Assembly (NCBI RefSeq): GCF_002113885.1
Contig: NW_018404492.1
Span: 5,200,258 to 5,264,257, forward strand
DNA: 64,000 nt
Direction of reading: 5' to 3'
DNA from: Mizuhopecten yessoensis
Lineage: Eukaryota
The position numbers and the translations under genes are program-made. The notes beneath the pieces were generated by a model, which saw only the letters and a program-made list of their open reading frames with translations, did not search any database and was not told where the DNA came from. Position 1 is the first letter of the stretch; each line of letters starts with the position of its first letter. Of this stretch, positions 16,803-51,697 are shown piece after piece.

Positions 16803-17249
16803 ACTCAAGGTTACTAAATATAACTCGTTCCAGAAAGCATGCGATTTTGTCAAAATCGTTCATAATATGACACCGGGAGCAGCCTAGATTGACAGGAAAA
16901 TATGTATTTTTTAATTTAATGTATGATTTGCCCAATATCGTGCAGTAGAATTTTTCGGTAGACTTCATGAAACATCGAAAAATGGTCGAATTCCAGTTGG
17001 TCAGACACTGTGCTGTCCTCGGGATGACATGCTAAATCCCTGGTGGGTAGCGCTTAACACATGGCATGTACATTATTCAATGTCGGTACAGTGTTTCTAC
17101 GATAGAAAACAAACTTACTTGTATCCTAGTTCATGTCGGATACACGAGTCCAGTTTTCAAGCTGGTCAGGCTGCCGATTGGAAATCTGAACAGAGCTTGC
17201 CATTTTCTCTAACTTTTTTGGCCTTGGCGCTGATTGGCTTCTAAATTTA

Positions 17250-17680
17250 ACGACCCAGGGTGATGATATTTGGCCAGTAACATGCTAGGATGATAGGCTT
17301 CCAAGTTTGTCAAATGAATGACCTCCACTCATATTCAAGGTCACAGAGGATCAATTGTCTTAAAAAACTTTAAACAACTTCTTCTGAGTAACCAAAAGGA
17401 CCAGGATGGTGATATTTGGTCAGTATCATGCTGGGATGCAGGGCAACCAACTTTGTTAAAATAAATGACCTTCACCCAAGGTCACGGGGTCAAATATGAT
17501 TAAAATCTTTAAACGACTTCTTCTGAATAACCGAAAGGCTGTGGATATATATATATATATGGCCAATAGCATGCTAGGAAGGAGGGCTACCAAGTTTGTT
17601 CAAATAAATGACCTTCACCCATATTCAAGGTCACAGGGGTCAAATATGCTCAAAATCTTTAAACAACTTCTTCTGAATAA
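17250..17680. repeat. About 3 copies of a ~150-bp HINE-type repeat (ATGACCTTCACC..AAGGTCACAGGGGTCAAAT)
   Basis: Direct repeats visible at about 17318, 17465 and 17608. Confidence 0.6.
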
Positions 17681-17779
17681 ACAATATCACTTTTTCCGTG
17701 TCGGGGGGAAAAAACTTTAAAACATTTCGAGAGATGCAAGTAGATTAAGAATTTGGACACATTTTTGTTGCCACGTACT

Positions 17780-27873: not shown

Positions 27874-29219
27874 TTTACAGGACATTCTGGATCTATTTAT
27901 TAACTGATAAGAATTTAATTGTTTTACGGTATATGAAGCACATGTTATTTAGAAAAAAATCTTGTTCTTCAAAACAAGGATTTATATAATATGAGCATAG
28001 ACAGGGATTAGTAACTTGCTCTTTGTAATACTACTTGTATTCTTGTGACAAGTTATATTATATGTCTGAATGACCACCCTTCATTCTCAACCAAATGACT
28101 CCACACTAACAAAAAAACTCAACAAAACTTTTCAATTTCAAGGACACTTAAAGAGAGACAGGTGATTCAGATTGAAATGAGAAAACATGAACATGATATG
28201 CTATAGTGTTTCCTCAAGGCCAAGCCACTGATCTGCCTAATTTATGTCACTGATCAATGACATATAACATTGAGCCTGAAGTAGTTGTATCAAATTTTTA
28301 AACAAATAAGAACTGTTTCCTGATCATTTATATATTTCAAATGATTTAACATTGTGAATTTGAGACAGTAGCTATTAATTACTACATGAGCTTGATTGGA
28401 TTTTTCGTAAGTCAAAACTCTAACTATTGAAAATGTGCTGAATCTTCTCAAGATTATTTCCAATAAAACATATTTGGCAAATTCTAATGCCCACGTTCCT
28501 TTGTGAATGTTTGAATGAATACACATTTCAAGTTAATCATTCACAACAAAACTGTTTCTTCCCTGCCAAAAATGCTTCATTTTAGTATCTATTTGTACAT
28601 TTATTTAAGTAATTGAACTTCTTGTTTCAATGAATAAAATGTGTGCATCACAATCATATCTTTTTGTTTTCCTTGTATATTTCCATGGTATGAAAAAGAA
28701 TGAATTTGGTAATGGTCATCTTCATTCATCGCAAATCATAATATTTAAAATTGGGTGTAGACAACATTACAAGAAATTCCTCTTTGACTATTCGAAATAG
28801 CCAGCTTGCACTAACCAGAGAACGTGTTATTCGAACGATACACACACCTATGAAATTTCATATCAATATTTGGTGTCAATAAATAGTAACAGTTCATATA
28901 AGTATTGACCTTTGAGCTTGACCTTTGGGTTATTTACATGGGAGCATTACACATCACAAAACCCACATCCATGTCTACTTTAATAACAAGATGTTTGGGC
29001 AAAGTTTTGATTTTGACAATATGTATTTAAATCCTTGTACAAAGTTTGAAAGAAAATATGGACTAATGTTACCATTTCCATTCATTTTATTAAAGTATGT
29101 CTGTCACACATATTAAAATAATTATAACATAAATTAAAACAATTCAGACATTCATTACAGTATCAACCAGTATATAATGTTAAACATTTAAATAGGAACT
29201 TACATTTTATGATCAAACT

Positions 29220-30035
29220 TTAATAAAAGATAACAAATTTCTTAATATATTATTAAAATTAAAAGAATTAACATTTTTAAATTAGAAATCAAAGAATTTC
29301 ATGATTGTAAGTACAGCAGCTGTAATAATGTGCATGAGGGCAACAAAAGTAATCGTTGACATATTAGTGCCCAAACAACATCAACGAAGCACTTAATTCC
29401 TAATTATTCACAAAATGCAACATCATTTATTCAAAAATAAACATTTAAAATTAATTGTTCAAAACAAAAATGTTTCTTTCCTGCCAAAAATGCTTCATTT
29501 TAATATCTATTTGTACATTTATTTAAGTATTTTTGAACTTCTTGTTTCAATGAATAAATTATTTGCGCATCACAATCATATCTTTTGTTTTCCTTGTATA
29601 TTTCCATGGTATGAAAAAGAATGAATTAATAAAAGATAACAAATTTCTTAATATATTATCAAAATTAAAAGAATTAACATTTTTAAATTAGAAATCAAAG
29701 AATTTCATGATTGTAAGTATAGCAGCTGTAATAATATGCATGAGGGCAACAAAAGTAATCGTTGACATATTAGTGCCCAAACAACATCAACGAAGCACTT
29801 AATTCCTAATTATTCACAAAATGCAACATCATTTATTCAAAAATAAACATTTCAAATTAATTGTTCAAAACAAAAATGTTTCTTTCCTGCCAAAAATGCT
29901 TCATTTTAATATCTTTTTGTACATTTATTTAAATTAGAAATCAAAGAATTTCTTGATTGTAAGTACAGCAGCTGTAATAATATGCATGAGGGCAACAAAA
30001 GTAATCGTTTACATATTAGTGCCCAAACAACAAAG
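29220..30035. repeat. Local ~400-bp tandem duplication with a partial third copy; related block at about 28540-28705
   Basis: TTAATAAAAGATAACAAATTTC recurs at about 29220 and 29626; AATTAGAAATCAAAGAATTTC occurs three times. Confidence 0.85.
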
Positions 30036-30354
30036 TTCAATAAAAAATATACCACTGGCAAACTAAATATCAGTGGTTAACGCAAGCACTTCTGAAATCT
30101 GTGGATGTGAAGAAAAACAAATAAAAGATGTTGCATTATCTTTAATAATTCGAACAAAGTCATTGAACACATTTTCATAAATATTAGGAATTAATTAAGT
30201 ACATTATATGTATATCTATAAAGATCAACAAGAGAACAGGCCCCTCAAGACAGTTACCGCATCAGAAATGATATTACTGCATACTTATATTACCATGCAA
30301 TATTTTACAACGTCACTTTAATATTGCTAGCCTGATTCAGTATTTCTATATTTT

Positions 30355-30575
30355 GGGGGGCTGCGTTGGCCAAGTGGTCAAGGTGACTGACATTCTGCTA
30401 CCACTAGCCCTCCACCTACACTGGGTCGCAGGTTCGAGACCTACGTGGGGCAGTCGCCAGGTACTGGCTGTAGGTCGGTGGTTTTTCTCCGGGAACTTTC
30501 CTCCACCACCAAAACATGGCACGTCCTTAAATGACCATAGCTGTTTATAGGATGTAAAACACAAACAAACCAAAA
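30355..30575 (+). mobile_element. tRNA-derived SINE with V-domain-like core
   Basis: A box TGGCCAAGTGG, B box GGTTCGAGACC, core GTGGTTTTTCTCCGGG, (CAAA)n tail, 12-bp TSD TCTATATTTTGG at 30345 and 30576. Confidence 0.88.
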
Positions 30576-31442
30576 TCTATATTTTGGCATCATAAAGTAT
30601 CCGCTTCTGATGACCTACCTGACACTGGTTGATGAATTGCATGTCTTTTCATGTGTTAATTTACATATGGATACATAAATGTACTCGATATTACAGGTTA
30701 CGCTCAAATCAGATAACCCCCTACTATATCAACTATACATGTACTACTATAGATGACACACATTTTCCCTATGTATTTATTGGCTGAATCATAAACACAT
30801 GGAGGTCGATGATTTGTGACATTGTCTTCGTATTGCTGTATTATTTTTAGAAACAGCAGGTAAATATTCACCAAGTGACGACATTTCAATTTTAACGTCA
30901 CTATATGCTCTCTGCAAAAAGCAGTACTTCCTCCATAACAATTTGTATGCGTTCCAAAAATATCTAGCATCTACTACGACAGTTAAGGACTTTTATTTCC
31001 AGTGATGTGTGGTTACAATTATAACCCTGAGAAATTGATATTGACTGAGACTTCTTTTGGTGAATATGTGGTTATATATGGACCTGATAAAGTGATATTG
31101 TAGGAGACAAAGTCAAAGTCTCGGTCATTATCACTTACTTAGATCCATGTAACCTCTTATTCACCTCAACAAAAGTCCATAATTGATAAATATTTGTATT
31201 GTAATGGAAGATATTTACATTTATTACATATTTTAATAAATACAGGTTTTTTGTATATGCGATACGACACAATTGCTCTAACTCATATCAGCCCTCGCCG
31301 TATCACACCCCAAAATCTGTATCAGCCCCCGCCGTATCACACCTCAAAACCTGTATCAGCCCACAAAACCTGTATCACACCCCTTTTGAAAAGAAAAATA
31401 GATAATAAGGTAGTAATTTTTATTAGTAAGTATATAATACAT

Positions 31443-31566
31443 TAGAATAAAACATGCCCTTTTCCATATCACACCCAGTATCAACCCTCAAACAATATCA
31501 GCCCGAGGGCCGAACAGTCTGGGGTTGATACTGGGTGTGATATGGAAAAAGGCATGTATTATTCTC
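31443..31566. mobile_element. Palindromic MITE
   Basis: CATGCCCTTTTCCATATCACACCCAGTATCAACCC / GGGTTGATACTGGGTGTGATATGGAAAAAGGCATG. Confidence 0.65.
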
Positions 31567-31787
31567 TATGTCCATGTACTAAATATTCATTAGTACCAGT
31601 TTCATTTACAAATCGTCATCACACTAACAGTATGTGAATACACAGCACCGTTAAGATCTTCTATACATAGAAACATCCTAGATTATCAGATGACTAACAC
31701 TTCAATGACAGCTTAGTGCTATAATACAACATGTAAACAACTTTATAAATAAACCAATCCCTGTATTAAAATAAAATACAGGGACCT

Positions 31788-31940
31788 TAGTTCGAATTTT
31801 TCTGACGTTTTATCGACTTTTTTTTATATCGGCCTGTCGTCGATTAACGTCAGAACTCCGGCCCTCTATAATATGTGGGAAATAATCAACGACAGACCGA
31901 TATAAAAAAAGTCGATAAAACGTCAGAATAATTTGGACTA
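31788..31940. mobile_element. Mutator-like MITE with 9-bp TSD
   Basis: Imperfect TIRs of about 55 bp and TSD CAGGGACCT at 31779-31787 and 31941-31949. A solo right end lies at 59335-59387. Confidence 0.8.
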
Positions 31941-32949
31941 CAGGGACCTTTACAAACTGATACAACCATGATTAATGCCCCAACTTGGAAAACCTGAGGG
32001 TTGAATTTTCCTATCCTCTGGCTATGAAACAGAGTCTTCTCTGATTCGACAATATGAGCTCATGAGGAACCATAAAAAGTGTTTTGGCTCGATACCATTT
32101 TAAAATGGAACCAGAGAAAAAAAATCTTAAATACCCATGGGTACTATAGGATCAGAAAATTCAACCCTCAAGTTTCAAAATTGTGACAAAATCCATGGCA
32201 AAAACCTGGAGGTTTTTACCCATTGTGAAAGCCCATTGATTGGAATTGCCCTATCCTGAACCACTGGACATAAAAGAGTTTTATATTATTCTTATACTCC
32301 TTTGTTATCCTGGATAGTTCTATAACATTATACACACATTATACAGACTGGAATGAAAGAAAATGAAGAGCATCGTGTTACCATAAGTACCAGCCTGTTA
32401 TCTCAAATGCTCTATTATTTATTTTGATGTCATATACACTAAGGTGAATGATTTGAAAGTCGCAACAATACAAAAATAATTTAGCTACGTATACTATGAC
32501 AGCAGAGGGCAGTTACGGCCATATATAAAGTTACACAGAAGTATTTTAATACTACAGGCATGTTAGAATAAATGATCTACCCAGTTTATGATCCTCTCGT
32601 AACAACACAACATCACAAGTCCAAGCTGTGACGGATAACAGACTTTTATTAACAATGTTTAGTGTATCTAAGTATATATATATGCAATATTTGATGTCAT
32701 ATTAACTACATTTTTTGCAAAATATACAAAAAGGTTTCTGCCTGCATCTAAACTCATCACTGTTACAAAACTCCAAATGACAACAATTTTAAGCTTCATA
32801 TTTAATTTCAAAGACGCATTAATTCCATATTTCAAGCCCATATCTATTAAGTTGTAGGGATGTTTGATTAAATTAGAAAATAGTAACCAATAAATCTTAA
32901 AAAAAAATGTTATTATAAAAATAAAAATAAGTTTTCTTCTCAAAATTTT

Positions 32950-33065
32950 AGACCTTACTGTCTAGATGATAGACCTCCTGTCTAGATGATAGACCTCCTG
33001 TCTAGATGATGGACCTACTGTCTAGATTATAGACCTACTTTCTAGATTATAGACCTACTGTCTAT
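32950..33065. repeat. 20-bp minisatellite (AGACCTACTGTCTAGATGAT), 5-6 copies
   Basis: Direct repeats. Confidence 0.85.
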
Positions 33066-33464
33066 ATTCATCTATCTTTCCATTAAAATTATTCAACATT
33101 TCAAAGATTGATATACTGCATATGAACAAGCATGTAAAGTTAATATTACAAGTCTCCAACATTGATTGGAATCCTCCATGCAATTCACATGTTCATTTGT
33201 CAGGTTGTTCCTTTCATTAAACTTGTCTGGTCCTATTCTTCCATTATCTTACGTTGAATATGATATTGTTCAAGCCAACTGTTCTGAATGTCAAGTGTTC
33301 AGTTTCTTGTAAATTCCGTTCCATTCCATCAAATATTTGTGGTTTGATTGGTAAAACTCAAACTACCGTATATGTCAAAGCTAATATAAATTGACGAACT
33401 GTATGGGATTGTATAGTAGCTAAAGTGATAGCTTTGTTCTTTGGCTATGTACAGAATTCAATAC

Positions 33465-33642
33465 TGTATTTGTTCTGTATACAATGTACTAGGTAATGTA
33501 TTTGTTCTGTATACAATAAACTAGGTAATGTATTTGTTCTGTATACAATGTACTATAGGTAATGTATTTGTTCTGTATACAATGTACTATAAGTAATGTA
33601 TTTGTTCTGTATACAATGTACTAGGTAATGTATTTGTTCTGT
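33465..33642. repeat. ~32-bp minisatellite, about 5 copies
   Basis: TGTATTTGTTCTGTATACAATGTACTAGGTAA. Confidence 0.85.
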
Positions 33643-34094
33643 TCCTGTCTGTATGGTATTTCATTGTGTTGTATTGGTTCGTATATTATTTTTGCTGTAT
33701 ACATTATAGCTAGTTCAGTTTGATTTGTATATCACTTTTAATTTATTCTAGGGATTGTATGGTCTTTGTGTTGCATGCATATGAATTGCTTTGAATTTAT
33801 GCTAATTCTTCTTCTTAAGTGATTATGTTTGTACAATATGCTAAATACATTTCTATAGAATGATGTGTGTTTTATGTGTCAATGTATAGGCTGAAACTGT
33901 TCTACGTTGAGTATGACTTTTTTAATTGAAACAAAGGCTCATCTTTGAATTAGTTTTGTTTTCATTGATATAAAAGGCTGTTGACGTTTTCCATTAGTTT
34001 ATATGGAGGTAAAGACTTATCTTTCTATCATTTTACATGGAGACTAGGATATAGCTTTATGTGCTGTGTGGGTGCTGTAACAATCGCATCCTTC

Positions 34095-35285
34095 TGGTTG
34101 ATGTGGCGACTAGGATTCATCAATGTGTTCTATGGGTTCTGTGACTAAGCCTTCGATCAGTTGACTTAGAGACTAAGATTCCTCTATGTTCTCTATGGGT
34201 TCTGTGACTAAGCCTTCGATCAGTTGACTTAGAGACTAAGATTCCTCTATGTTCTCTATGGGTTCTGTGACTAAGCCTTCGATCAGTTGACTTAGAGACT
34301 AAGATTCCTCTATGTTCTCTATGGGTTCTGTGACTAAGCCTTCGATCAGTTGACTTAGAGACTAAGATTCCTCTATGTTCTCTATGGGTTCTGTGACTAA
34401 GCCTTCGATCAGTTGACTTAGAGACTAAGATTCCTCTATGTTCTCTATGGGTTCTGTGACTAAGCCTTCGATCAGTTGACTTAGAGACTAAGATTCCTCT
34501 ATGTTCTCTATGGGTTCTGTGACTAAGCCTTCGATCAGTTGACTTAGAGACTAAGATTCCTCTATGTTCTCTATGGGTTCTGTGACTAAGCCTTCGATCA
34601 GTTGACTTAGAGACAAAGATTCCTCTATGTTATCTATAGGTTCTGTGACTAAGCCTTCGATCAGTTGACTTAGAGACAAAGATTCCTCATGTTCTCTATG
34701 GGTTCTGTGACTCTATGCGATCTTCTGGTTGACTTAGAGACTAAGATTACTCTTTGTTATCTATAGGTTCTGTGACTCTATGCTATCTTCTGGTTGACTT
34801 AGAGACTAAGATTCCTTTATGTTTTCTATGGGTTCTGTGACTCTATGCTATCTTCTGGTTGACTTAGAGACTAAGATTACTCTTTGTTATCTATAGGTTC
34901 TGTGACTCTATGCGATCTTCTGGTTGACTTAGAGACTAAGATTCCTCTATGTTCTCTATGGGTTCTGTGACTCTATGTAATCTTCTGGTTGACTTAGAGA
35001 CTAAGATTCCTTTATGTTTCTATGGGTTCTGTGACTCTATGCAATCTTCTGGTTGACTTAGAGACTAAGATTCCTCTATGTGTCTGTCAGTTCCCTGACT
35101 CCATGCATTCAATAGGTGACATGGTGACTAGTGCTCTATGGGTTCAGTCAATCTACACATTCTATCCGTTGACTTGGCGACTAGGATTCGTCAATGTGCT
35201 CTATGGGTTCAGTCAATCTACACATTCTATCGGTTGACTTGGCGACTAGGATTCGTCGATGTGCTCTATGGGTTCTGTGACTCTC
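34095..35285 (-). repeat. About 19-copy 63/65-bp tandem array overlapping the MALT1 stop codon and 3' UTR
   Basis: Period 63 bp at about 34130-34690 and about 65 bp at 34696-35285. The proximal copy is the coding end VTEPIEHIDES*. Confidence 0.92.
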
Positions 35286-38200
35286 TTGTAAAGGTGCAGA
35301 TTGGCGATGAGTGGTAGACCAAGGTTTATTTTTTGTGTCATAAAGTGCTTGTCCATCTCATCCGCCAAGCAGTACTTAACAACAATTTTTAACTCCAAGT
35401 TGTCCTGTAAATACAAATTTAATATCAGCAGTCTATGTGCAGTCTGTGTACAGTGTAAAACAAGTATCAATATAACCATTTAGAAAAAGGCAATCAATAA
35501 AAGAGATTCTTCTGCTTAAAACTCTTCTCACAGATAATGTGAAGATTTGAAGTTTATGTATTTAATTTGACAATAAGTCATTATAAATGAACTCGAAAAC
35601 ATGATCATTGCTGGCCTGCCTAGCCCCTCCACAATCATGTCCTTCTCTGTCCCCCTTAAGATGCCTCTTTGCTGCTGAAGAACGAAATCTTTCGCAAAAC
35701 TATCTCATCTCATACCTCGTTTTTACCCATGGGACAAAAAAGTTAAAGTTGTCAAAGGCAAATGAGTTGAATATCATAACGAGGTGGTACTTTACATCTT
35801 TGTTTATATTACATACAACAACAGGGAGCTTAATGTTTAGCATTGATTTATCAACTTCATGTAAACTCGATGCATACATCCCCGAGAGTGAAATTCATTG
35901 TTAAACTACCTGTACAGGTCAGTGAAAATATTGGTACAGGGTATTCCCTTGGGATATTTATTTTATCAAAATTGAGTAAATTGTAAATATTGAGAGTCAA
36001 GAGTTCATACATGAAATTTGTAATTCTTTACAGTAGGTTACATGTAAAGACATTTATTGTGAACTATTGGAATGAAGATACCTTAGTTTCCCTTGGGAAG
36101 GTGTATTTTCTGAATGAATGTACATGTATAACAAGTTTTGGCTACAACAAATAATTTCATTGGTCTTCTTGGGGTTTATTGTAAACATATTTTATTACAT
36201 GTAGGGAGAATTTTATTTACCAAGAAATCTGGTAAATCACTTTATTAAAAACAATTTAAATTTATTTATTTATTTTTAAATTCTCACCCGAAGTTTCTGT
36301 AGGTCTTGAAAGGTTGACTTGGTTATGGCCCTTTGCTTCGGGGTGTCTGATGCGCTGCGAGTGATTGACGTGTCCGACACATTTTTAATGTCTCCCATCA
36401 TGGATATACTCTACGGCAAACAAAATCAAAACTTGAAGTTTCTTAAAAACATTACATGTCCGATCCTAATGAGACGATTACATTCTGTGTGATTTATGAA
36501 TGATGGTATTTTTTTTAAATTTCTGACCCCACCCTTAGAGGCCCTCATCAATACTAAATTGAATCCAGATTGTTCCAGATTCCAATGTTGTGCCATTCTA
36601 AAGACCAGTCTCCAAATTTAAAACTATCATTTATACTTAAAATTATATTGCCATGGTGAAGGAATGCTATATACCAAATTAAGTCATGAAGAGGAATTTT
36701 CTAAATAACTATATTGCAAAGCTGGTTTATGCCAGCAATGAAATCTCTTTCCCCAGAAATGTGACACCAAATTCAGATTATTTCTGTCCAGCCATTATTG
36801 AACAAAATTGCAAAAACATGCAAGTCTGGGTCTTTTAGTTGGACACCAACCTTCATCCCTCAAGGTGCTTTCTGTCCAATGAATTTAAAGTGACTCAGTT
36901 CCTTACTATATAATCAATTTAAAACTTGTCAAACCAATTTCGAGGAAATGTCTTTTGAATAAATATCACTATATTTACATTTGCTCTGCATGTTTCCATT
37001 GGAATGCAATGAGCTATTGTAATGTCATCAATCTCTTTTGTTATGTCATCAATTTTATTGTTGTCAAGACTTCATTTGCTGTTCAAAGAACTGTTCAAAA
37101 TAACTAAATAAAGCGTAACTACTCTATCAAAATGCGAATATAAATAAGGAATATTTTAGCAAATATTGTTATGGTCCTATAACACACATTTCTATTGCTG
37201 ACAAACTTACATGAAGCACTGCTGGGCTTTGTTAGGTTTGTCATCAATAGCAATGTGTGTTATAGGACCATAACAACATTTGCTAAAACATTCATTGCTG
37301 GTAAATGTGAACTTTGGTTTCATTTTTGTTTGTCTGTTGCGTCAAGGACCTTGACAGATGTATACTGCACATATACCTGTTAAGTGCATGGCAAAGTAAT
37401 AGATGAAGATGTTTTAAAGCTAAACACAAGAACACAAATTGTTAACCTACTTTTGGCCAGTCATAAGGAAATGCTATAGATCTGCATGTATTCCCTGGGT
37501 TCTTGATGGTGGCAAACAAGTGAAGCACATTTGAGAATTCCATCTGGAATGTAAGCTCCAACACCAGGTTTCCAAGCTCTGGTATTCTTATTTCCTGCGG
37601 CTTTGGAGTGTCTGAAAAAGTAAAATATCAAACTGAAAAGCACTGATGATAGATATACTAATAGAATCGTAGTAAAAATGGTTGTCTTACTTATAACAAT
37701 TAAACCAAGGATAAATATTGTTATATTTATGCCACATGCCCATAAATTACTTCTTAAATGGAGTTACTTGAGCTTCTGCTTAGCCTTGAATGCTTCCATA
37801 CCATACATTGGACAGCTCTTGTTTACAAAAATGGTTATCTATTATTTCATAGCCATATCTTTCACTGAACCAAGCATGGAGGAAACAGCAATTCAACATT
37901 ATATTGTACAAAAATATGGTTTCATAATTTTTAATGCATATGCAAGTACCTGGTAAAAGTTGGGCTGTATCAGATCCTTATTGGGAATGGTAAATTAGAC
38001 TTAATTGCTTTTCAGAGTATGCTTAGGTCCAGATGTGTGAAGAATACACATCACATTGGAGTTCTGAGTAACAGGTGTCTTAATTACCGTGAGCTTTTAG
38101 CCACATCTGTTTTCGGGTGTTGTAGGCTTGTGTGTAACCCTTGGTCAGTATTCGGTCCGACAATGACCTTCCCCAGTCCAGCAAAGTAGACCTGATCTCT

Positions 38201-41200
38201 GGCTTCTGCAGCTTACAGTGCTGCGGATCCTGTTTCCAGGCTGTAATGAAACCACAAAATGATTTCAGTTTATAATATCAAAGTTTTACTTTCTACACAA
38301 ACAATGTACATATTAAACGTGTCGCAACGTTTCAAGACAGACTGGTCCCTTTGTCAAGGTATGACTGAGTTGCGACACGTTTAATATGTACAATGTTTGT
38401 GTAGATAGTAAACAATTGATATCACATATTTCCAAAATGATGAATCTTATTGAAGAAAGATATTTCAATTTATAGAATTGTGAAAGATGTTCCTTTAGGT
38501 ATTCTTGTAAACATATGTTAGACATTCAACTGTTGTCGTGACCAAGCTGTATCTACCATTGTTTCAAGCTTTCCTTACAGATCATCCACAATACCACATG
38601 TACTCCTGGGAATATCAACCAATTTCTTTGAAAATTCATACTCATTACTGTATAAAGTACATGTTTTTATCTTATAAATAGTATTAATGTATAGATAGTC
38701 TACTGCACAAATGAAACTTGACATTAGATATGCCCCCTTCATATTGTACAGTTTTTTGCCAGCACTGGATGTCTATACATTCATTAATACGATAGCCCTC
38801 TACTATAGAGTAAAACCTGATGTTTAATCTGATACCTTGTGGGACTCAACGAGTTGCTTGGATGAGACAGAGTGCCAGAGGACTAGTTTTTTATTTGGAT
38901 TTCTGGCTTATAGCTATACATCAGTTAGGCAAGATGTCCCGATACTTTAAGTGTCAGATTACACAGTATGTCAGAATACTCTCTGAGGATGGACCAGACA
39001 GGTTTTGCTGTACATAACAATTAACTAAGTCTCCTAATATATAAATTGTGTCCCTGATGCTGAGAACATTTTATTTCAATTGATAATACTGTAGTAGAAA
39101 GATTCAAAATTTTCACAAAAATCATCAGTTTTCTAGTTTCAAAGTGTCCTTTAAGTCATCATTTTTTCCATGGCGGCACTTTGAACATCAAATAGACAAA
39201 TACAGCATAAACAAGTAGTGCCCATGAGTTTCCCAGATGAAGTATACATGTTTCCCAGATGAAGTATACATGCAGACTCAAACTAAAGACTGAATGGACT
39301 ATGGATAAACACTCATCAGTTGAAAAAAGGTGTCTTTATAATTTCAAAGCAATGAAGATAACTAGCTGGTAACTAAAAAGAAAATGCTTCTAAACACAAT
39401 AAATATTTGACATTGAAGAGCAGTGTTTAAATCAGTCTTTTTACTGGCAACTTACCGTCAATGACATCATTAAAGAAATAGCTGACTGGTTTGTTTTGAT
39501 AGATGAACTTTTGAAGATATTTCACCAAAATTCCATGTTCGTGGTCTTCATAAGCAAACATTCCCTCACTCCTTTTAACAGAAACACAGCATATTCTTTA
39601 TTACAATGAGGTTCATTCAATTTGCTTTGGTTTGGTTTGTTTGTGTTTTACGTCCTATTAACAGCTATGGTCATTTAAGGACATGCCAGGTTTTGGTGGT
39701 GGAGGAAAGCCAGAGTTCCCGGAGAAAAACCACCGACCTACGGCCAGTACCTGGCGACTGCCCCACGTAGGTCTCGAACTCGCCACCTAGTGGTGGAGGG
39801 CTAGTGGTAGCAGAATGTCAGTCGCCTTAACCACTTGGCCACCGCGGCCCCCACATTCAATTTGTAACTTTTCAGCTAACTTTGCTTACTTTGAACTAAC
39901 TTTTGACATTCGAGGTAACACAATATGTTACACTCTGTACATCTATGAAGATTCATGTCTCTTCATTGTCTTGGGTCATTTGTATCCTTTTCAGGTTCTT
40001 TTCTAGTTTTCTATTTTGGTCAGGTTATGAGGCAAAGCCATCTACAGTGTATGATTAATTTACTCCAGTTCAACTGAAGTTATCACCCAATAATCTGACC
40101 AAAAAAGAAAGATTTCCTTATATTTACAATATTTGTTTTGAATAGTTCATAACTATTTTATTCGTTATAGTCTGATCAGCCGACGCAAGAACAATTTTCA
40201 AAACCTATTAATATCTGAGCGGTTCAATGAAAATAACAGCCTGAAAATTTACATAGGTTTTGATTGACTCCACCCACATCTACTGTTGATGTCGTCCCAC
40301 AATTGTGTCTTGTTTTCAGAAAATTTTGGATAACCCCTCCCACATGAATTGTTGTCATTGTCATGGCGATTTGTCCTTTTCTATAGTCCGGTATGAAATG
40401 ATAACTCCAGTTTGCTTGAACAGTGGTTGTTGACTGAATGTCAGTGAAGAATGTAAATATAACTCCATATTGACCTAAAATTCATAACTGATAATTATGT
40501 TTTTATCTTAATCAATGGACGGAACTGAAAACCTCAAATAAAGATTGCTTCATGTCATCATGATTAAAAACCATATACCGGAGACTCTCACCCAGTCTGA
40601 TATTCGCCCTTTTCCAATGAACTCTACGTACGCCAGTGTTAATCTTGCCCTTTACATGTTACTCACCATATATGTAACTGCATGTTGTTTACTTAAACTT
40701 GTAGAAGGGCGAAAAAGACAAATGTTAAACTGTAGAAAAAATCCAGGTATATAGTAATTCATAAACATCTGAAGTATCTTTGACGTAATACTTTGAATGA
40801 CAGGTACGTACGTAGCATAGATCGATACACAGTTGCCTTTAGGGTCCGGCACACTGGGGCTCTCTCGTCCAGTGACACATCCAGTATTTGATGGAGGCTT
40901 GCTGGGGATTTTATTTCTGTAGCAGAAACAAATAGCATCTCATAACGGAGGTCCACATTTTATTGTTTACAGGGTTCCCACCAGAGTACATTTGTATCGA
41001 TAGTTTATTAAACATGAACCTATTATATTGTTGTTAATTCTGTATGAATGTGAAAAATTCTCCGACAATGATACTAACACATGTTTTAAGAAAGATACCT
41101 GGGTAAACAAAGGCTATAGATTTTCGACTTTGTCAATTATCTGCACACCTCTTAACCCATCCAATATAGTTATTGATTTACGCTATTGTTTCCAAGTCTA

Positions 41201-44200
41201 TTTTATCATTTTAAAACCTTATGGTAACCTATAGCTACCAAAACCTTATGAACTGATGGAGCAATTACATAACAAGACATGAGAAAGTACTAAAATCTAA
41301 GCATACAGAAATCACGAAATTACAAAATTTAACCACCCTTTTCTGTGCCAAATACACCAAAATATCTCAAAGTAGAGTATAAGCCTTGATGTGACGCAAA
41401 GTAAGATTTTGAAAAGCAACAAGAAAGTCTTACCTGATTCTACAGATATCTAGGATGAGTGTAACTAAGGCTGGGTCAGACTTCTGCATGGCCCTAAGGA
41501 CATCGTTTGATGAAATACAATCCTCTATTGTGTAGCCACTTCTTGCATCAGGAGGAACAAAGTAACACTGTCCGTTCTCCTCGAAGCCGTGACCGCAAAA
41601 ATAGAAAACGCCATACACACCTTTTCCAAGTAGATTACAATACTCATGAATTGCTGCATTCATTTCCTGTTTTGTCAAGTTTAACAATGAAACCACTTTG
41701 AATTCCAGACTTCTGAAAGCTTCAGCCATCTTTGCAACATCATGGATAGGAGCTTTCAGTGTTGTCTCGTTCATATAGTCATAATTTCCTATCAGCAATG
41801 CGACCTTGTCTGTGGCTGTAATACAATAACTATAAAAGGTCAGAAGGATTATAAGGTTAGTGAAATACATGTGTGCAGTTGAACCTCTAAAATAGCCGAG
41901 ACAATAAATAAACTTCTAAACTGACAAATATATTTTTCTTTTTCTTTCAAGAAATACTGAAATAAGTATCCAAGGGTGCAGCCAGAACCAAGGCTAATCC
42001 TGGTAGCATGACAGCGTTCATATCTTCATGCTCAGCATGGACATACATAACAGGGACTATAAAAGGTGTCCCGTGTGAGAACTGTCCAATCTCGCATGGA
42101 AAGGATCCCTCTGAGTTTTTCGAAAAAGAGTAGGCGAGTAGCGCTGACACAGAGGATAGGGTTAGATTTGTTTTCGGCTGAAAGAACTAGGTTCTCTTTA
42201 TTAGACATTTAGAAGGACTCCAAAACATATATACCAAACCAAACAATAGAATAGGTAGGAACTGGTGTTGCTGGCGGCGGCTCAGTACCTCACATCCTGT
42301 CCAGACTTGGTGATGCTATACGAAGAGTGTTAGGTTAAGGCAAATATTAGGCCTAGGAGCCAGCTTACAATAATTAGACTTATACAGTAAATACATACAG
42401 GATAGACGGCTCCTTATCTAACCTGTCTCCCTCTTCTATCCCTTCACTCCATACTTTATCCCTTCTATTCATTTTCCTGTCTTTTCTTTTTGTCTGCTGG
42501 ATATAACCAAACTACTCGGTAGTGAAGCAGACGTAAAACCTATCAATCAATCAATCAATCAATCAATGGATATACAAGGTAAAAGAGTAGATTGTGTCCT
42601 AACTCAGCTGGGTAACAGGACTATATAGACAAATGGTCAGCTGAAAATTGGACCCCACAGTGCTACACATTGTAACAATCCTTACCTATGAAATGTGAAT
42701 GGTTGAGGCTGTTGTATCATACATTACACTTCAGTAGTCTGACCAGCTAATACAATACACTGTTACAATATACATAGATTTGTACTCTGATTGGCTGAGG
42801 ATGTTGGGATATAAATACTCTGATTGGCTGAGGATGTTGGGATATAAATACTCTGATTGGCTGATGGTGTTGCAATATTCATATCTTTGTTCTCTGATTG
42901 GTTAAGAGTGTTACATTATACATACCTCTGTTCTCTAATTGGTAAAGAGTGTCCTCTGTACTCTGATTGGTTAAGAATGTAACATTATAATGTACATACC
43001 TCTGTACTCTGATTGGTTAAGAGTGTTAAATTATACATTCCACTGTACTCTGATTGGTTAAGAATGTAACATTATACATACCTCTGTACTCTGATTGGTT
43101 AAGAGTGTTAAATTATACATTCCACTTTACTCCGATTGGTTAAGACCGATACAATATACATAACTCTGTACTCTGATTGGTTAAGACCGATACATTATAC
43201 ATACCTCTGTACTCTGACTTGCTGTGGTTGGGAGGAGACTTGATAGACAGACAGGCAGGATGAGAGAGGACGGATTCTTTGGTGTTCGGGCACGTTACAA
43301 CACATTGGTAGGTCCCCTGCATGTTATGGTCCTGAAGGTTGAACATCTTTAGATCTTTCTCTTCACAACCTGCACACATAAATGTGGGGTTACGGTCAAC
43401 CATGGTAAGTTTCCAATAATTGTGAATGCTTGCTATTATCTATTGATACTTTGACTGGTTGTATGAAATCAAAGTGTCCAGACTAACATTATTTTACAGC
43501 ATCCTAATTTAAATGCCAAGGAATTGAAGGGAAGGTAATATTTTTTATAATTCCTTTTTTTAAGAGGGGACAATATTAAAAAAGAACTCTAGTTTGCACA
43601 TCTCTTCTGTAACAGGGAAGGAAAAACGCGCAGCCAGACCGGGGTTCAAACCTGGGACCCTCAAAACTCTAAACGACGCTCTACCAATTGAGCTACCTGG
43701 TCGTCGACAATCGACACAGTCCAGTTCAGCTACATTTTCAATTTGACATCTTGTATAATTTACAGAGCTTACAGTAATACACCTGATTATTCATTTTCCT
43801 CATTTAAAAAGTAATCTAAAGTAGAATGTTAAAAAGTAAAACATGGTTTTACCATCCTTTTGTAAAAAATATTAAAAAAATAAATGTATATATATACAAA
43901 CTGAGCAATAAATAATATTTTTTTAAAGTTAAAGAAAAGTGACATAATTGATCTTGACCATTAGCTTGTACCTTCAATCACAGTTTAGTTTAAACATATG
44001 TTATTGCCAAGCAAATGGATTGGGCACAAGTTATTCCATTTGCTTGACAATAAAATATGTTTAAACTAAACTGTTCAATCACAGCAAAGTCAAGACCCTT
44101 TCCTTCATCTTTGTGTGTGTGTAAAGCATGCATTCATACACACTTGAAGACTGTTTAAAAGTTCTATGAACATTAATTTGTAAAATGTGAGTGTGTGTCT

Positions 44201-47200
44201 TTAAACACTTGAAGATTTAATAAAGCCCCACCTTTATCTATTTGTGTATATATAATCATAACGTAGGAAGTGTGTTAAAATTCTATCTTTCTGGAATCTT
44301 TAATTTTCCAAAATTTTAGCAAATTCAATATTGTCAAAAAACGCAGATTGTGGCGAAAAAAATGGAGCTAAAAGTGATAAATATTTAAAGACAGAAAAAA
44401 ATATCCACAACTGAAAACAAAACACTTTGACTTACTCGAAACTATGTTTACAAGACAAAATATAATTTAGCTAAGTTATACCTATAGTTTGATGATCTTT
44501 GTACCACTTGTAGGTCAGAGGATATTTGCACCTGGCCTCAACTGAAAATAGACAACTTCCTCCCACTTCAACAGTGCACGTCTTCGGGTTGAGTATGATG
44601 TCAATTCCTACAAACGTGATAACAAAACCGGCATTAATCTTTATATATGTATAGGTCATTTTAAAATATATTACAACAGAAATTGAAATCTGTTACATTC
44701 TATGAAATATCATTCAATGATATGTCGTATTTCTGTGGTTGTAGAAACACTTGGAAATAAAACTGGCCTGACAAATAAGGTACATGTAAATGTTTAATGA
44801 ATCTAAATGAACGGTTGCCTGTTATTTTGATAGGATTTATTGAATAACATTAAAATAAATTATAGGGAACAAAGTAAGTGTTGAAAACAAAATCTTACCT
44901 TCAGATCGGTAATCTACAAGAAGAAAAGAAAGTTAAAGACCCATTATTAAAGTAAAACAATGTTTCTAAATTACCCATCTATTTATAGCACTGAACAATG
45001 CAGAGGAGGTTAAATCGAAGATTAAAATATTTTAACAACATCTAAAGCATTAAAAAAATGTTGTTTTGACAGGATTTACTTAATAATCAACATTGATCAT
45101 TACCAATATATATTTTAGTGAACAAAATAAATATTTGAACCATATTTCTAGATTACACATTCATCAATAGCACAGAAATTGCAGATGATATTAAATAGAA
45201 GGTAAAATAGTTCTTCAAAATCTAAAAAGTCTTCAGTATCAACCCTGCTGAGATAATTGTTAAGCAATGATATTTTCTAAAGTTTAATTAAACTAAATCA
45301 AAAAGTACAGTTCATGCAGCTTTAATGTTGAATGTGGCTATCTGAAGGATAACGAAGCCAATTCACTGCAACTAAATAAAGGAGATTGAGAAGACTTTCA
45401 ATTTGTGACTAAAAAAAGGTAACGCTCTTTTTTTTCTAAATTTTCTTTTCTAAATATTAGAAATGATATAATACACAGTTCCTATTCATAAATAATCTAA
45501 ACAGATGACAACCAAATATTTTTATGTTACGAATGAACACTCGGCCAACTGTCTCATTTAGCAACTTCTTGGTTCGCCTTAATAGTCGCGCGTCCCTTAC
45601 CTCGAACAACAGCTTCTGGGTTCACATTAAGAGTCACTTCTCTGCTGTGAGTTTTCCCAAACTGGTTCTTTATCACACAGGTATATGTTCCCTGGTGCTT
45701 AATGCTGACATCAGGAATCTAAGATGAAAAAGCAGAAAAAAAACATAATTGCGGTATAATACCTCTAAAATTGTGAATCTTCTACACCTAATACAAATGA
45801 AAGCATACTTAAAAAAAGATACCTCAACAATCATAATTACCCTAAAACAAAAGCGTTGTCACTACCAGGTAACAAGAGGCCCAAGAGGGCCTGTATCGCT
45901 CACCTGAATATTTAAGCAGTCATAGCAAAATATTCTCATTAAATATTATATTGCACTAAAAATATTTCCCTCGCAAACTTTGTTGGCTCCATCTGTTGAA
46001 ACTACCAGCAAAATATTATTATAAGATTCTATGCTTTTTGATTCTTCTTCAGAAGTTGCTTGACATATTTTTCCCTGTGATCTTGTAAGTAGGTCAATGT
46101 CATTTTCCTACTCCAATTGGTTAGCTTTATTCCAAAAAGCTACCAGCTAAATCTTATGAATCCATTCCTTTTAGTTCTCAAGAACAATTCCATTAAAATG
46201 TTGTTGACCTCTGTGACCTCTAAAGTAGGTTGAGATCATTTTCATTTGCAAACTTTGGTGAGCTCTATTCCGCGAAGTCACCAGCCAAATATTATAATTT
46301 TATGCCTTTTAATTTTTCAGAAGAAGCTGTTTGAACTGTTTGACATATTTGAACGCTGTGACCTTGAAAGTAGGTCAAGGTCATTTTCATTCGCAAACTT
46401 TGTTTGGCTCTTTCCCAGGAAGCCACCTGCCAAATATTAAGATTTTATAACTACCAGTTCTTCAGAAGAAGTCGTTTAAAGTGTTTGACATNNNNNNNNN
46501 NNNNNNNNNNNNNNNNNNNNNNNNNNNNNNNNNNNNNNNNNNNNNNNNNNNNNNNNNNNNNNNNNNNNNNNNNNNNNNNNNNNNNNNNNNNNNNNNNNNN
46601 NNNNNNNNNNNNNNNNNNNNNNNNNNNNNNNNNNNNNNNNNNNNNNNNNNNNNNNNNNNNNNNNNNNNNNNNNNNNNNNNNNNNNNNNNNNNNNNNNNNN
46701 NNNNNNNNNNNNNNNNNNNNNNNNNNNNNNNNNNNNNNNNNNNNNNNNNNNNNNNNNNNNNNNNNNNNNNNNNNNNNNNNNNNNNNNNNNNNNNNNNNNN
46801 NNNNNCAGCCAAATATGAAGATTCTATACCTTTTAGTTCTTCAGAAGAAGTCGTTTGAAGTTTTTGACATATTTGACCCCGTGACCTTGAAAACAGGTCA
46901 AGGTCATTTTCGTTCTCAAACTTTGTAGGGCTCCTACCAACGAAGCTTTCAGCCAAATATCATGACTCTAGGCCTGTCCGTTCTTCAGAAGAAGTTGTTT
47001 CAAGGAAAAGTTGACGGACGACGGACGGACGACGGACGCCGCGCCACGGCATAAGCTCACTTGGCACTTCGTGCCAGGTGAGCTAATAACGCTGTTAGAT
47101 TCCAGTACAGCAGGGGGGTGTAGTACATGTAATACAGTAAAAACCTTGTTATACTGTCACCTTTCGTCCAGAGAAATGTTGGCGCCATAAAGGTGTTTGG

Positions 47201-50200
47201 CAATAAATTGAGGAAAATTAAAAAGGAACTTGAGGCCATCATGGTAAATATGTAAGTAACAGCTGATTTGCGTCCATACCATCATGAAATTGAAAAGCAT
47301 TCTGTTCAATCCTTATTTCAAAGTCGTATCATTGATTGTTTGGGTTTTATGTCCTTGTTCCGGTTATTACCAAGCCTATATATGTATAGGACAAAGAATC
47401 TAGACCTAGGACTCAATGTAAAATTTATCACTTTTCATTTGTACACGTCAGTGTTAAGCTCTAACCACTTCCAAGCTACTTCCCTGGCCAGTTGTCTGTC
47501 AGATATGACTGGCTAGCCCTGGGGACTCGGACTAGTCCCCTCACAGTCTATACAAATTGACATACATGGAGGCAGAATTGAGGCAGAATATACCTTTAAC
47601 TTACAAAAGTCTTACCATTAATTTTCCTGCCTCCTTATTACTATCGATCACCTTGCCATTTCTCAGCCATTCATACATTAGAGGTTTGTGACCTATTCCC
47701 ACACAGGTGAGTTCTGCTCTGTCCCTCAGATGTACACACAAATCCTCCGGCTCAGTCAAAACTTGAGGCAACACCGCTGTACAATAAAGGGGGAACAAAT
47801 TATGTAACTCGTCAAGTGCTCATGTCTACAAACATATACCACAAAAGCCAATACACAACGATAAATTAGAAATTATACAAATTGACACCATTATATATGC
47901 TTGGTCTCCAATGGAAAGAATGTGTCAAATCACAAGTTGTTTGGCATACAAGAATATGCTACATTTCTTGTAGTCTAAGATAATTGCAACAACATCTAGT
48001 GCATAATTCAATATCTATGAATTTTCAAATTAAGAACAATAGTTTGACGAATTCTAAAAAAAAGTAGCGGTTCAAGTGTACAGTATTGAACAACATACGT
48101 TTTCTAGGCTCACTGTTGTCACCACCAACTTCTGAAGGCATGGACATTTCAGTAGGTGATGTGGCTCTGTAGTACACTTTGACTGAGGAAATCTGTGTAA
48201 ACTTGCAGAAATCACTACCCCCTCCATTGGACAGACGGCAACAGTATGTACCACTGTCATCAAAACTGTCAACAAAAAACTACAAATGTCAAATTCAGCT
48301 TTACCCTTATCATTAACTCATTCACCCCTGAAATTTCATCATGGACTATACCAATCTTTTGAATTGGAAGAGTTCAAATGTGTCTTCAGGTGTGAATGAG
48401 TTAAAATATGTGGTTCTGCTGTAAAAGTCTTCTAATCCCAGTTATTCCCCTTATCTATGAAGTCTGTTGTCCAAGTTAATGCAATGGTTTTCCATCCCAG
48501 TTATACCCCTTTTCTATAAAGTCTGTTGTCCAAGTTAATGCAATGGTTTTCCATCCCAGTTATTCCCCTTACCTATAGTCAGTTGTCCAAGTTTATGTGA
48601 TGGTTTTCCATCCCGGTTATTCACCTTATCTATAAAGGCAGTTGTCTAAGTTAATGTAAAGGTTTTACATCCCAATTATTCCCCTTTTCTATGAATTGTA
48701 TATAATCACATTACTTTCAGAATAGCTTCCATTAATTGTTATAACTTTTCCAACATGCTGTAAACAGATTATATCTTGATAATTTTATTTATAAATGTTG
48801 AGTACATATATTTCTGTCACTTTCTAATTTATTTTACAGCAAATAACTTCTATCTACAGTTAAAGAGCAGTGAAATCATGTATTTGCACTAATTATATGA
48901 AATAGGCCATATTGTGAATGCCTTGGAAGAAAGAAGGTCCCTCCAAACTTGTTAAATTATTTTTTACATGTACCAATTGAAAACAAACCATGTTCTGTTA
49001 ATTTTGAATGTAGAATCCTTAGCCCCTTCAATCTCGTCATAGTCGTTGCCGTTGAGTTTGAACCACTGGTAGCGAGGGTATGGAAACCCAACCGCCTCCA
49101 CATGCAGCTCTAGTTTGTCTCCCTCATGCAGCTGTTTTGTGTCTGCGGGATGGCGAACGATTTGAATCTCCTCTGAACAACACAGAACAAAGTTATGATA
49201 AATGATGAATATTGTATAGTGCCTTAGTTGCACAAGGCCCAATAGTGGTGGTGCTACACACCTACTGGTAACCTAAATGGTCATTTCTTTGGGCACTCGG
49301 ATCCATATTCCTCCAACATTTAAACCTTCCATCTGCTAACATTGAGGCCAACAAGAATGATTAATATAATCTGAAACAAGGCATCACAAGTGATACAAAT
49401 CCCCTTGCATTCACACACTGTAACATATGTAAAAGGAAATGAAGTCACTAGAGGGATGACAATTTTTTTTCTTTTCTAAAAATAGTAAAAGTGACCTTGA
49501 CCTTTAATGCAGTTACCTAAAATGGGAACTTGTTCAAGATATTGCCATACCAAACACTTGTATCAAGTTTCATGAAATGCTGTTGATCGAGGAATGAAGT
49601 CGTTATAGCGATGACAAAGTTTTTCTAAAAATAGTAACAGTGACCTTGACCTTCAACAAAGAAACCTGAAACACGAACTTGTTCAAGGTATTGTCATACC
49701 AAACACTTGTATTAAGTTTCATGAAATTTTCGTTAAGGAATAAAGTCGTTAGATCGATGACAAAGTTTTTCTAAAACTAGTTACAGTGACCTTGACCTTC
49801 AACGTAGAAAACCAAAACGCGAATTTGTTTAAGATATTGCTATACCAAACACTTGTGTCAAGCTTCATGAAATTCTGGTAAGAAATGAAGTCGTTAGAGC
49901 GATGACAAAGAGTGTAACATACATACATACATGTGTACGTACTTACACATGTACGTGTACTTACCGAGTCCTATAACCCCCTCAAACTTTCATTGCGAGG
50001 GGATAACAACTTTTTCCATACTGCTGTAAAATTAATAAAGTTTATATTTTCAACCAAATTTTCTGCATTATTTACCTTTTCTCATGCCTTAACTTTATAA
50101 TGCTTTTGGTGGTAAATTGGTTTAGATATTAGCAATCAACTTTCATCACGACAGTCAGGGTTCAATTCAGGGATCAGGCATGAAAGGTATGCGGTAACCT

Positions 50201-51697
50201 GATTGACCATGTGGGTGTTCTCTGGATAAAATGGTAACTGCTATATTGAAGGTGCCAGTGTATGATTTTTTTTAAAGTTTAATTCCCGAATATTTGACAA
50301 TTGAAATGTGCATTTCCTTTTTTTATGTTGTTTTTCTTTGCCAGTGTAGAGTCTCAATATGTTGATGTTAACTTGAACTACATAAAAACATCTAGACAAG
50401 GCACACAAAAAAAGAAAAAAAAAGAAGTTTCCTGTTGCAGGTCCGAATTTGTCTTAAAAAAAAATTAATCAAATAAATAAAAAAAAACACAATTCTTCAA
50501 AAAACATCCATAAAATGAGTAGGATTGGCCAAAAAGATAGGTATGGTTGGAAGATGACAACAGGTGTTGCAGTTTTTGCCAAAATATGATTTTTGAAATA
50601 TCTTAATCAAAGTTCATCATAACAAAATGTATTACATTTTTAAGTACCGGTACATATGTGATTTATTTTGGCTTATTTTTACAGCTGAATACAGGCTGCT
50701 TTCCCTAGCAATTTTTTTTTTCAAAATGCAGAACAAATGAATATCTTCAAAATTTTAATAGAAAATAATGCCATATTTCTCTAATTCATGTAGGAACATG
50801 TACAAGCTGTTGTAAAATTTACGTTGAAAAGTCTGTTTAACAGGTAAAAATCTTTTATTTACCATATGGCTTCATATCTATCAGAAGGTTTTCCAGTTTG
50901 AGTTGATCTAGCACGTGGATGAGTTCAGCCACAACCATGCCCCGAGCACCAAGTTCAGAAATTATCCTATTGGTAGGACTACCATCACCAAACACAAACC
51001 GTCCAAACTTGTTCTCTATATCTGTTTGGCTGCAAAGCAAAGATTATTGAGGTTTAAATATTTTGATATACAATGTAAAAGGAAATACCAGAAAACACAA
51101 GATAGATTTTTTTATTTTTTTTTAATAAATGTCCAAAGAAAACAGGGGTATCCCCCGGGGTATATGTTTAACCAAAATAAAAATAATTTATGTAATAAAT
51201 ATACACGTATTATATTTTGGAAAACCCCTCTCATAATAAGTTATGACCTAAAGAGAGCCATAGAATATCAATATTAATCTGATGTTTAAGTACAAAGTGG
51301 CTTATTCAATAATGCAGACCTTGGTTCGAGTTATCTGAAAAATTCCCATCAGTATATATATAGCCACCCACTCCCTCCTCTCATAAAATTTAGAAGAAAA
51401 TGATAGTGATAGTTTGGGTAGATGTTGGGAATGATGGAGGTATTTTTTTTCTCAAATGCATTCCTATTTTATGCTGAGCATGAATATTATACTCTTGGTA
51501 TAAGTTAAGGGCTATTAGGTAATTAACAACCTGAATTCGTAATCATCCCGTAAAGTTGATGCAATCTTAAGAAAGGCACGCCAGCTGCAAGTCTCTGGGT
51601 TGTTGTCCAAACTTCTTTCAATTTCTTGCGTGATCTTTGCTGGCAATTGAGAAATGTTTCTCTGCATGCCGTTGGTTCCTCTTTGCAAGTAATCCAT
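35246..51697 (-). CDS. MALT1: MALT1 paracaspase (death domain, 3 Ig, caspase-like domain, C-terminal Ig, TRAF6 motif), about 825 aa
   Basis: Exons 51697-51531, 51029-50863, 49172-48989, 48265-48099, 47776-47616, 45718-45601, 44913-44899, 44607-44482, 43369-43219 (or to 43205), 42708-42686, 41815-41434, 40916-40812, 39571-39456, 38240-38088, 37611-37451, 36410-36288 and 35404-35246; phases are consistent. Motifs ATDKVALLIGN, catalytic FCGHG and LDICR, IYAT, WLKAH, EFSNVL, DLQKLR, NLGLPLIA. Confidence 0.95.
39625..39853 (-). mobile_element. Second copy of the same SINE, in a MALT1 intron
   Basis: Close reverse-complement match to 30355-30575. 11-bp TSD CATTCAATTTG at 39614 and 39854. Confidence 0.88.
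41434..41815 (-). CDS. MALT1: MALT1 caspase-like catalytic exon (His/Cys dyad)
   Basis: TDKVALLIGNYDY...LLNLTKQEM...VFYFCGHGFE...ILDICR, with an AG acceptor and a GTAAGA donor. Confidence 0.97.
42040..42567 (+). mobile_element. SINE-like retroposon remnant with (ATCA)n tail
   Basis: GGACTATAAA..GTCCCGTGT..GAAAAAGAGTAGG core resembles molluscan Meta-type SINEs (recalled, not verified). 3' end GACGTAAAACC(TATCAATCAATC)n. Confidence 0.4.
42780..43216. repeat. 33-46 bp minisatellite with a CTCTGATTGG core, about 11 copies
   Basis: Repeated TACTCTGATTGG; the last unit merges with the MALT1 exon boundary. Confidence 0.85.
43605..43735 (-). mobile_element. tRNA-head short repeat, second family
   Basis: Minus strand reads GGTAGCTCAATTGGTAGAGCG...GGTTTGAACCCCGG. 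Similar decayed copies at about 8075-8170 (+) and 27430-27520 (-). Confidence 0.6.
43981..44073. mobile_element. hAT-like 93-bp MITE with 8-bp TSD
   Basis: CAG...CTG foldback; TSD TTCAATCA at 43973-43980 and 44074-44081. Confidence 0.75.
45871..47087 (+). mobile_element. HINE/pearl-like element with ~145-bp tandem repeats; spans the assembly gap 46492-46805
   Basis: Same 5' end, TGTGACCTTGAAAG repeats, (GACG)n, 3' hairpin. Same family as 52078-53498. Confidence 0.82.
46492..46805. other. Assembly gap (314 N)
   Basis: N run inside a tandem-repeat element. Confidence 1.
48317..48400. mobile_element. TTAA-targeting mini-MITE (piggyBac/Kolobok-like)
   Basis: TTAA|CTCATTCACCCCTGA ... TCAGGTGTGAATGAG|TTAA. 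Confidence 0.7.
48435..48695. repeat. ~59-bp tandem repeat, about 4.5 copies
   Basis: ATCCCAGTTATTCCCCTTATCTAT..GTTGTCCAAGTTAATG. Confidence 0.85.
49375..50006 (+). mobile_element. Second HINE-like family with ~146-bp repeats
   Basis: Repeats GATGACAAAGTTTTTCTAAAAATAGTAACAGTGACCTTGACC (3-4 copies), (ACAT)n, and a terminal CCCCCTC..GAGGGG hairpin. Related pieces at about 27035-27310 and 25910-25980. Confidence 0.65.

Follow-up and report, generated by a model that had tools for sequence, protein, structure and literature searches.

The 3′ end of a MALT1-like gene in Mizuhopecten yessoensis runs into a tandem array made of the gene's own last codons and stop codon, which raises the question of whether the array does anything for the gene. 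The original prediction saw in it a reservoir of cassettes for TRAF6 docking: unequal crossover or the loss of a stop could exchange the motif at the C terminus or increase its number, with NF-kB signalling adjusted accordingly. From the evidence given here we consider it probable that the array is instead an ordinary exon-edge ('mirage'-type) minisatellite that does not serve as a functional stock of signalling motifs, while a maintained reservoir appears very unlikely. Positions refer to the window, by which we mean the whole 64,000-nucleotide stretch of M. yessoensis DNA that was analysed, and asterisks in translations mark stop codons.

Exons of the gene were searched one at a time, and full-length comparisons used database proteins rather than a joined exon model. 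The exon at 41433-41810 matched human MALT1 structure chains (E 1.6e-33), with its catalytic GHG and DICR aligned with human GHG and DMCR, and gave a Pfam Peptidase_C14 match (E 4.8e-20). Other single exons matched Ig_3 and I-set. Pfam returned no death domain match on exons searched singly, and the N-terminal exons aligned to the N terminus of the MALT1-like protein of Pecten maximus. Among 1.84 billion representatives, the best match of the caspase exon was this same P. maximus protein (P0001, 98% identity), followed by other molluscan MALT1-like proteins. The terminal exon, which translates as DNLELK...LYKRVTEPIEHIDES followed by TAG, is identical to the C-terminal end of two proteins from the same species, OWF54071.1 (P0166) and XP_021346049.1 (P0176). 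The latter, at 822 aa, has Pfam matches to Ig_3 and I-set (116-314), Peptidase_C14 (427-644), and MALT1_Ig (693-810), and is 82% identical to P. maximus MALT1-like, with the terminal exons of the two species sharing 83% nucleotide identity. These matches identify the gene as the M. yessoensis type-1 paracaspase, MALT1-like, and the name MALT1 that it had been given stood up to the caspase-exon structure matches, Pfam, and own-species proteins alike. Translation in the annotated proteins terminates with the first of the stop codons, and for the RefSeq protein this is exactly TAG 35246-35248. Since MALT1_Ig ends at residue 810 of the 822 in P0176, the coding part that has been duplicated corresponds to exactly the 12-residue tail past the last domain. 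Coordinates are collected in Table 1.

Table 1. Window positions of the MALT1-like gene end and of the unit classes in the stop-codon array.
Feature	Position	Strand	Remarks
Coding span assigned to a MALT1-like type-1 paracaspase	35246..51697	(-)	Death-domain region, Ig domains, caspase domain, MALT1_Ig, 12-residue tail
Terminal coding exon, 52 codons	35249..35404	(-)	ttacag acceptor before it
Last 12 codons, RVTEPIEHIDES, with PIEHID (P-x-E-x-x-D)	35249..35284	(-)	Coding part of unit 1
Stop codon TAG in use	35246..35248	(-)	Most units hold a copy
Class A1 units W01-W02, 2 x 65 bp	35146..35275	(-)	EPIEHIDES*SPSQ(P/R)IECVD*; W01 holds the real stop
Transition units W03 (52 bp, internal deletion) and W04 (64 bp, degenerate start GAACTGACAGA)	35030..35145	(-)	
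Class B units W05-W09, 5 x 64-65 bp	34706..35029	(-)	
Class C units W10-W18, 9 x 62-63 bp	34140..34705	(-)	
Distal boundary unit W19	34074..34139	(-)	EPIEHIDES* like unit 1; not homogenised with interior units

Cutting the array by hand gave 19 tandem units of 52-66 bp on the minus strand at 34081-35284, which bears out the predicted array of about 19 copies built from MALT1's own C-terminal tail and stop, and the earlier coordinates (34095-35285) are off by no more than a few bases. Each unit combines 36 nt of coding sequence (12 codons) and TAG with roughly 27 nt of 3′ UTR. In unit 1 the coding part is the gene's own end, ...RVTEPIEHIDES plus TAG; the array is thus the tail, stop codon, and start of the UTR copied in tandem. 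Similarity to the units can be followed from about 35284 (AGAGTCACA), which is within the last coding exon, until it fades near 34081. Tandem Repeats Finder (TRF) reported the same region as two arrays, one at 34108-35081 (period 63, 15.3 copies, 94% matches, score 1373) and one at 35131-35275 (period 65, 2.2 copies). As predicted, the 63-bp units read in a constant frame, VTEPIENIEES*SLSQLIEGL, while the 65-bp units shift frame. P-x-E-x-x-E is kept in one of the five class B units, with the others reading PIET*, PIDNKE*, or PIENIK. Class C contains seven identical units (34140-34580) that read EPIENIEES*SLSQLIEGLVT, although this count of seven 63-bp units (441 bp) may be wrong in a short-read assembly, and two class C units carry TTG in place of TAG.

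A repeat of this kind could have arisen as an artefact of assembly, or the C terminus of the gene could have come from a satellite or transposon dispersed in the genome. The assembly is fragmented, with 82,659 contigs making up 987.6 Mb; in a second copy described below, two contigs stop at the array or no more than about 1.5 kb from it, and a number of identical 63-bp units is not trustworthy from short reads. However, the stretch 33700-35410 is represented in 20 runs (12 studies), and in 19 of these at least half of its words are present. The second locus has the same architecture. When 441 bp of the array were compared with the whole genome (988 Mb), only its own locus and one other were found, which led us to reject a dispersed satellite or transposon origin. 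Species without the array also have the same tail, placing the tail first. We regard both an artefact and a dispersed source as extremely unlikely.

The direction of change came from other scallops. At the P. maximus locus (L014), flanked by the same neighbours, arrestin and LigB, the tail is identical (RVTEPIEHIDES) and the sequence past TAG is without any repeat. A third pectinid encodes the same tail in a single copy, as seen in its genome (GCA_041381155.1, L023), one transcript contig (L015), and a protein (XP_069138124.1). Near the 3′ end, the terminal exon alone aligns between genera. Because two scallops that lack the array encode the same tail, the tail existed first and the coding end seeded the array, which represents a tandem amplification in the Mizuhopecten lineage. 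Comparison of MALT1 C termini across bivalves, which the original prediction had proposed, thus yielded an identical tail in three scallop genera and an array in Mizuhopecten only.

The second locus is represented on two contigs, at G000:C5585:1473635-1477344 (L004, L007, L022) and G000:C2996:89670-91436 (L008), which differ at three of the 1,767 bases compared. It is collinear with window positions 27954-30515 and 34087-36867 at 87-91% identity. Its array (L004) has 12 units in the same class order as the window (A1 x4, transition, degenerate, B x4, C x1, distal). Unit numbers do vary between copies, as anticipated, with A1/B/C counts of 2/5/9 in the window compared to 4/4/1 in the second copy. 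For each window unit the best match in the second copy was with the class that occupies the corresponding position, at 85-94% identity, which is about the divergence of the flanks, while the classes inside one array are only 62-75% alike (a difference of 25-38%). W01 and W02 matched units A01-A04 best (92-94%), W03 and W04 have A05 and A06 as their counterparts by position, the single class C unit is A11, and W19 corresponds to A12 (85%). Because same-position matches exceed the likeness within an array, the array had differentiated before the two copies split. The seven identical class C units in the window are a recent expansion, and the boundary units W01 and W19 have stayed close to the ancestral sequence.

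The second copy has also lost its first stop, as the original prediction had supposed could happen: TAG has become AAG, and the next three units carry CAG. The frame closes after seven extra codons, KSPSQPI*. Compared to the window copy, it has a dS of 0.18 and a dN/dS of 0.37, with three nonsynonymous changes in the tail (VTAPIEHVDES), and the copy looks to be under relaxed constraint. It is without the 3.5 kb that follows the array in the window (30515-34087), which the spacing in P. maximus suggests to be ancestral, and has in its place a 168-bp piece resembling an intron repeat at window 39688-39852. Other exons of a second copy were found only on contigs of 200-540 bp, with 91-100% amino-acid identity, and the 8 kb that continue past the shared block yielded no LigB exons. 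The second copy may be an allele or a paralogue; a simple allele is doubtful given the dS of 0.18, the absence of LigB exons from those 8 kb, and the agreement of both contigs on the alternative version.

The binding consensus of TRAF6 is P-x-E-x-x-(aromatic/acidic), and vertebrate MALT1 has a C-terminal TRAF6-binding motif, PVETTD. PIEHID in the translated scallop tail fits this consensus, and here the original prediction gained ground, since the position of the motif proved to be conserved across phyla. The strict motif occurs in the last 35 residues of 13 of the 35 best full-length paracaspase representatives, and in 21 of 35 when P or A is allowed first, compared to expected rates per tail of 0.028 and 0.06; the binomial p values (5e-12 and 3e-17) treat as separate 35 representatives that are not phylogenetically independent. 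The consensus is loose, with 0.00068 matches per residue elsewhere in these paracaspases. Taxa with a C-terminal motif include gastropods, bivalves, a brachiopod, annelids, and vertebrates. In a MAFFT alignment, scallop TEPIEHIDES falls in one block with REPTEQ.E of Haliotis and Patella, REPIEQEE of Mya, QPIECSE of Mytilus, VPMEQEE of Lingula, QAVENDE and EATEQDE of annelids, and vertebrate VPVETTDE, with several orthologues having A for P or Q for E in the motif. Like PVETTD, PIEHID lies in a short tail past MALT1_Ig, in the same column as Haliotis PTEQTE, Mya PIEQEE, and Lingula PMEQEE. This alignment supports the scallop tail as the counterpart of the vertebrate C-terminal site. In contrast, Staal et al. 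(2018) called PVETTD specific to PCASP1 (PMC5978004), and the molluscan site is a predicted one. If the motif does bind TRAF6, the link between paracaspases and TRAF6 would be older than the literature states. A motif of the form [P/A]-x-E-x-x-[D/E] was also observed soon after MALT1_Ig in P0007, P0010, P0014, P0167, P0005, P0069, P0038, P0047, and others.

Conservation of the tail is strict in the copy that is translated. Pairwise comparison of the last 12 codons among the three scallop genera gave zero nonsynonymous and four to seven synonymous differences, and dN/dS between genera was 0.02-0.09 for the whole last exon. The downstream copies do not look maintained: eight of the 19 window units have lost the motif (PIET*, PIEH*, PIDNKE*, PIENIK, frameshifts) through premature stops, E-to-D and E-to-K changes. 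A consensus match is kept in the other 11, seven of which are one recent identical copy, leaving eight broken among the 12 remaining units. Nine of the 12 second-copy units have a match in register (scored as 11 pieces, the first piece being two units). Taken with the invariant tail, the loss of the motif from eight units indicates purifying selection on unit 1 alone. Two observations weigh the other way. Conservation is somewhat higher in the half of the units derived from coding sequence than in the half derived from UTR (79% vs 69%), and the coding-derived part of W19 differs from unit 1 at three positions, all third-position synonymous (roughly one chance in 30, judged after the fact), although nonsynonymous changes are present in A12, the second-copy unit that corresponds to W19.

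These comparisons also bear on the proposed reservoir of docking cassettes. The fit of the tail to a motif conserved at the paracaspase C terminus, the 11 units that keep a match, and the real stop loss and different unit counts of the second copy are all what such a reservoir would lead one to expect, and an exchange of unit 1 with a B or C unit would turn PIEHID into PIENIE. However, the tail is identical in three genera, two of which have no array, its substitutions are all synonymous, and we saw no fixed swap or other trace of swapping. The intact units are largely the same recent copy, as described above. Multiplication of the motif is hampered by a stop in each unit and a 65-bp length that is not a multiple of three, and the one stop loss observed adds KSPSQPI, seven residues without a motif, in a copy that is relaxed (dN/dS 0.37 vs 0.06-0.09) and has a 3.5-kb deletion on its 3′ side. 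The proposed tie to NF-kB tuning is further weakened by the oyster paracaspase, which reportedly failed to activate NF-kB in human cells (PMC5978004). A narrower version, in which the array sometimes donates sequence to unit 1 by unequal exchange or gene conversion, and the variant docking motifs then carried in populations alter TRAF6 coupling, strikes us as highly improbable. It would predict alleles with PIEHID, PIENIE, or extended tails like that of the second copy, and if true would be a case of minisatellite-driven variation of a signalling motif. It needs the conserved C-terminal motif of invertebrate paracaspases to be a real TRAF6 site, a requirement that runs against the description of PVETTD as specific to vertebrate PCASP1.

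The array could also act in the transcript. The first canonical poly(A) signal after the stop is ATTAAA at 33921..33926 (-), 1320 nt downstream and beyond the array, followed by AATAAA at 33742-33747. Neither AATAAA nor ATTAAA was found inside the array on the minus strand, from the stop to 33926. Class B units W05 and W08 contain weak CATAAA variants, at which a share of the transcripts could terminate within the array. Of the runs with 33700-35410, two are on record as RNA; among the words sampled from this stretch, one contains 56% and the other 31%. Since exon and distal flank make up about 32% of it, the higher value indicates that array words are present in at least one RNA run; the measure is a k-mer share in assembled contigs, to which read-through transcripts or DNA carry-over may contribute.

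Given its probable location in the 3′ UTR, the array could be a functional element in which repeated sites for RNA-binding proteins or microRNAs set a dose for stability or translation through copy number, and the recent rise of one class to nine copies could reflect selection on that dose. We consider this unlikely. The array is not unusually stable as RNA structure (z-score 0.16 vs shuffles), and no Rfam family came near its threshold for it. It is absent from two other scallops, its unit classes are 25-38% apart with no shared site evidently kept, and an exon-edge array also occurs in an intron of the same gene.

An exon-edge minisatellite with little or no effect on the gene remains the reading we prefer. 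A segment of about 65 bp (12 codons and TAG with some 27 nt of 3′ UTR) would have been duplicated in tandem in the Mizuhopecten lineage, and the array would then have lengthened and shortened through slippage or unequal exchange. The first unit alone would be translated and held unchanged by purifying selection, while the other 18 units are most likely untranslated, decaying copies in the 3′ UTR. The effect of the array is most likely nil, or the addition of about 1.1 kb to the 3′ UTR. Neutrality is the default reading, and an effect through 3′ UTR length is possible.

Minisatellites in 3′ UTRs are known from other genes, such as the 40-bp repeat of the human SLC6A3/DAT1 3′ UTR VNTR. The scallop array resembles that VNTR in its probable location and in a copy number that may vary; unlike it, the scallop units are copies of a coding end and stop codon. 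The closest known kind is the exon-boundary 'mirage' minisatellites of the amphioxus Adh3 and globin genes, tandem repeats spanning an exon boundary that show length instability and concerted evolution of interior units with boundary units excluded (PMC3087553). Somatic instability and undisturbed RNA processing have been demonstrated for them (PMC3087553). As in amphioxus, the scallop units join an exon end to the non-coding sequence next to it, their number varies from one copy or haplotype to another, and concerted evolution affects the interior of the array with boundary units left out. The gene product would likewise come from the first copy, where the annotated scallop proteins end. Unlike in amphioxus, the boundary is a stop codon and 3′ UTR instead of a splice site, and the host is a bivalve. 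The locus adds one more exon-edge minisatellite to a bivalve genome rich in repeats and offers a clean case, in which outgroups give the direction of change and the second copy shows class turnover and stop loss. A by-product of the analysis is the P-x-E-x-x-D/E motif just past MALT1_Ig in molluscs, a brachiopod, annelids, and vertebrates, with strict purifying selection in scallops.

Other repeats were observed in and around the gene. A second exon-edge array lies in the same gene at window 42851-43217 on the minus strand, where a 41-bp unit, formed from ~12 nt at the 3′ end of an exon whose translation closes with ...KSEYR and from the GTATGT splice donor, extends for ~9 copies into the intron. 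P. maximus has an orthologous 41-bp array of 4.5 copies (L014:15970-16154), which makes the splice-donor array older than the stop-codon array. In the third pectinid, an 88-bp segment made of a MALT1 exon end (...RKAH) and the start of the intron occurs 1.9 times (L023:14856-15018) and is another exon-edge duplication. The 3.5 kb past the stop-codon array contain small arrays with periods of 20 (32949-33064), 32/66 (33465-33642), and 19/34 (31286-31383). Finally, a satellite-like family with a unit of ~145 bp is scattered through introns and intergenic DNA in and around the gene, at window 52407-53375, 46204-46491, 49472-49910, and 16054-17684.
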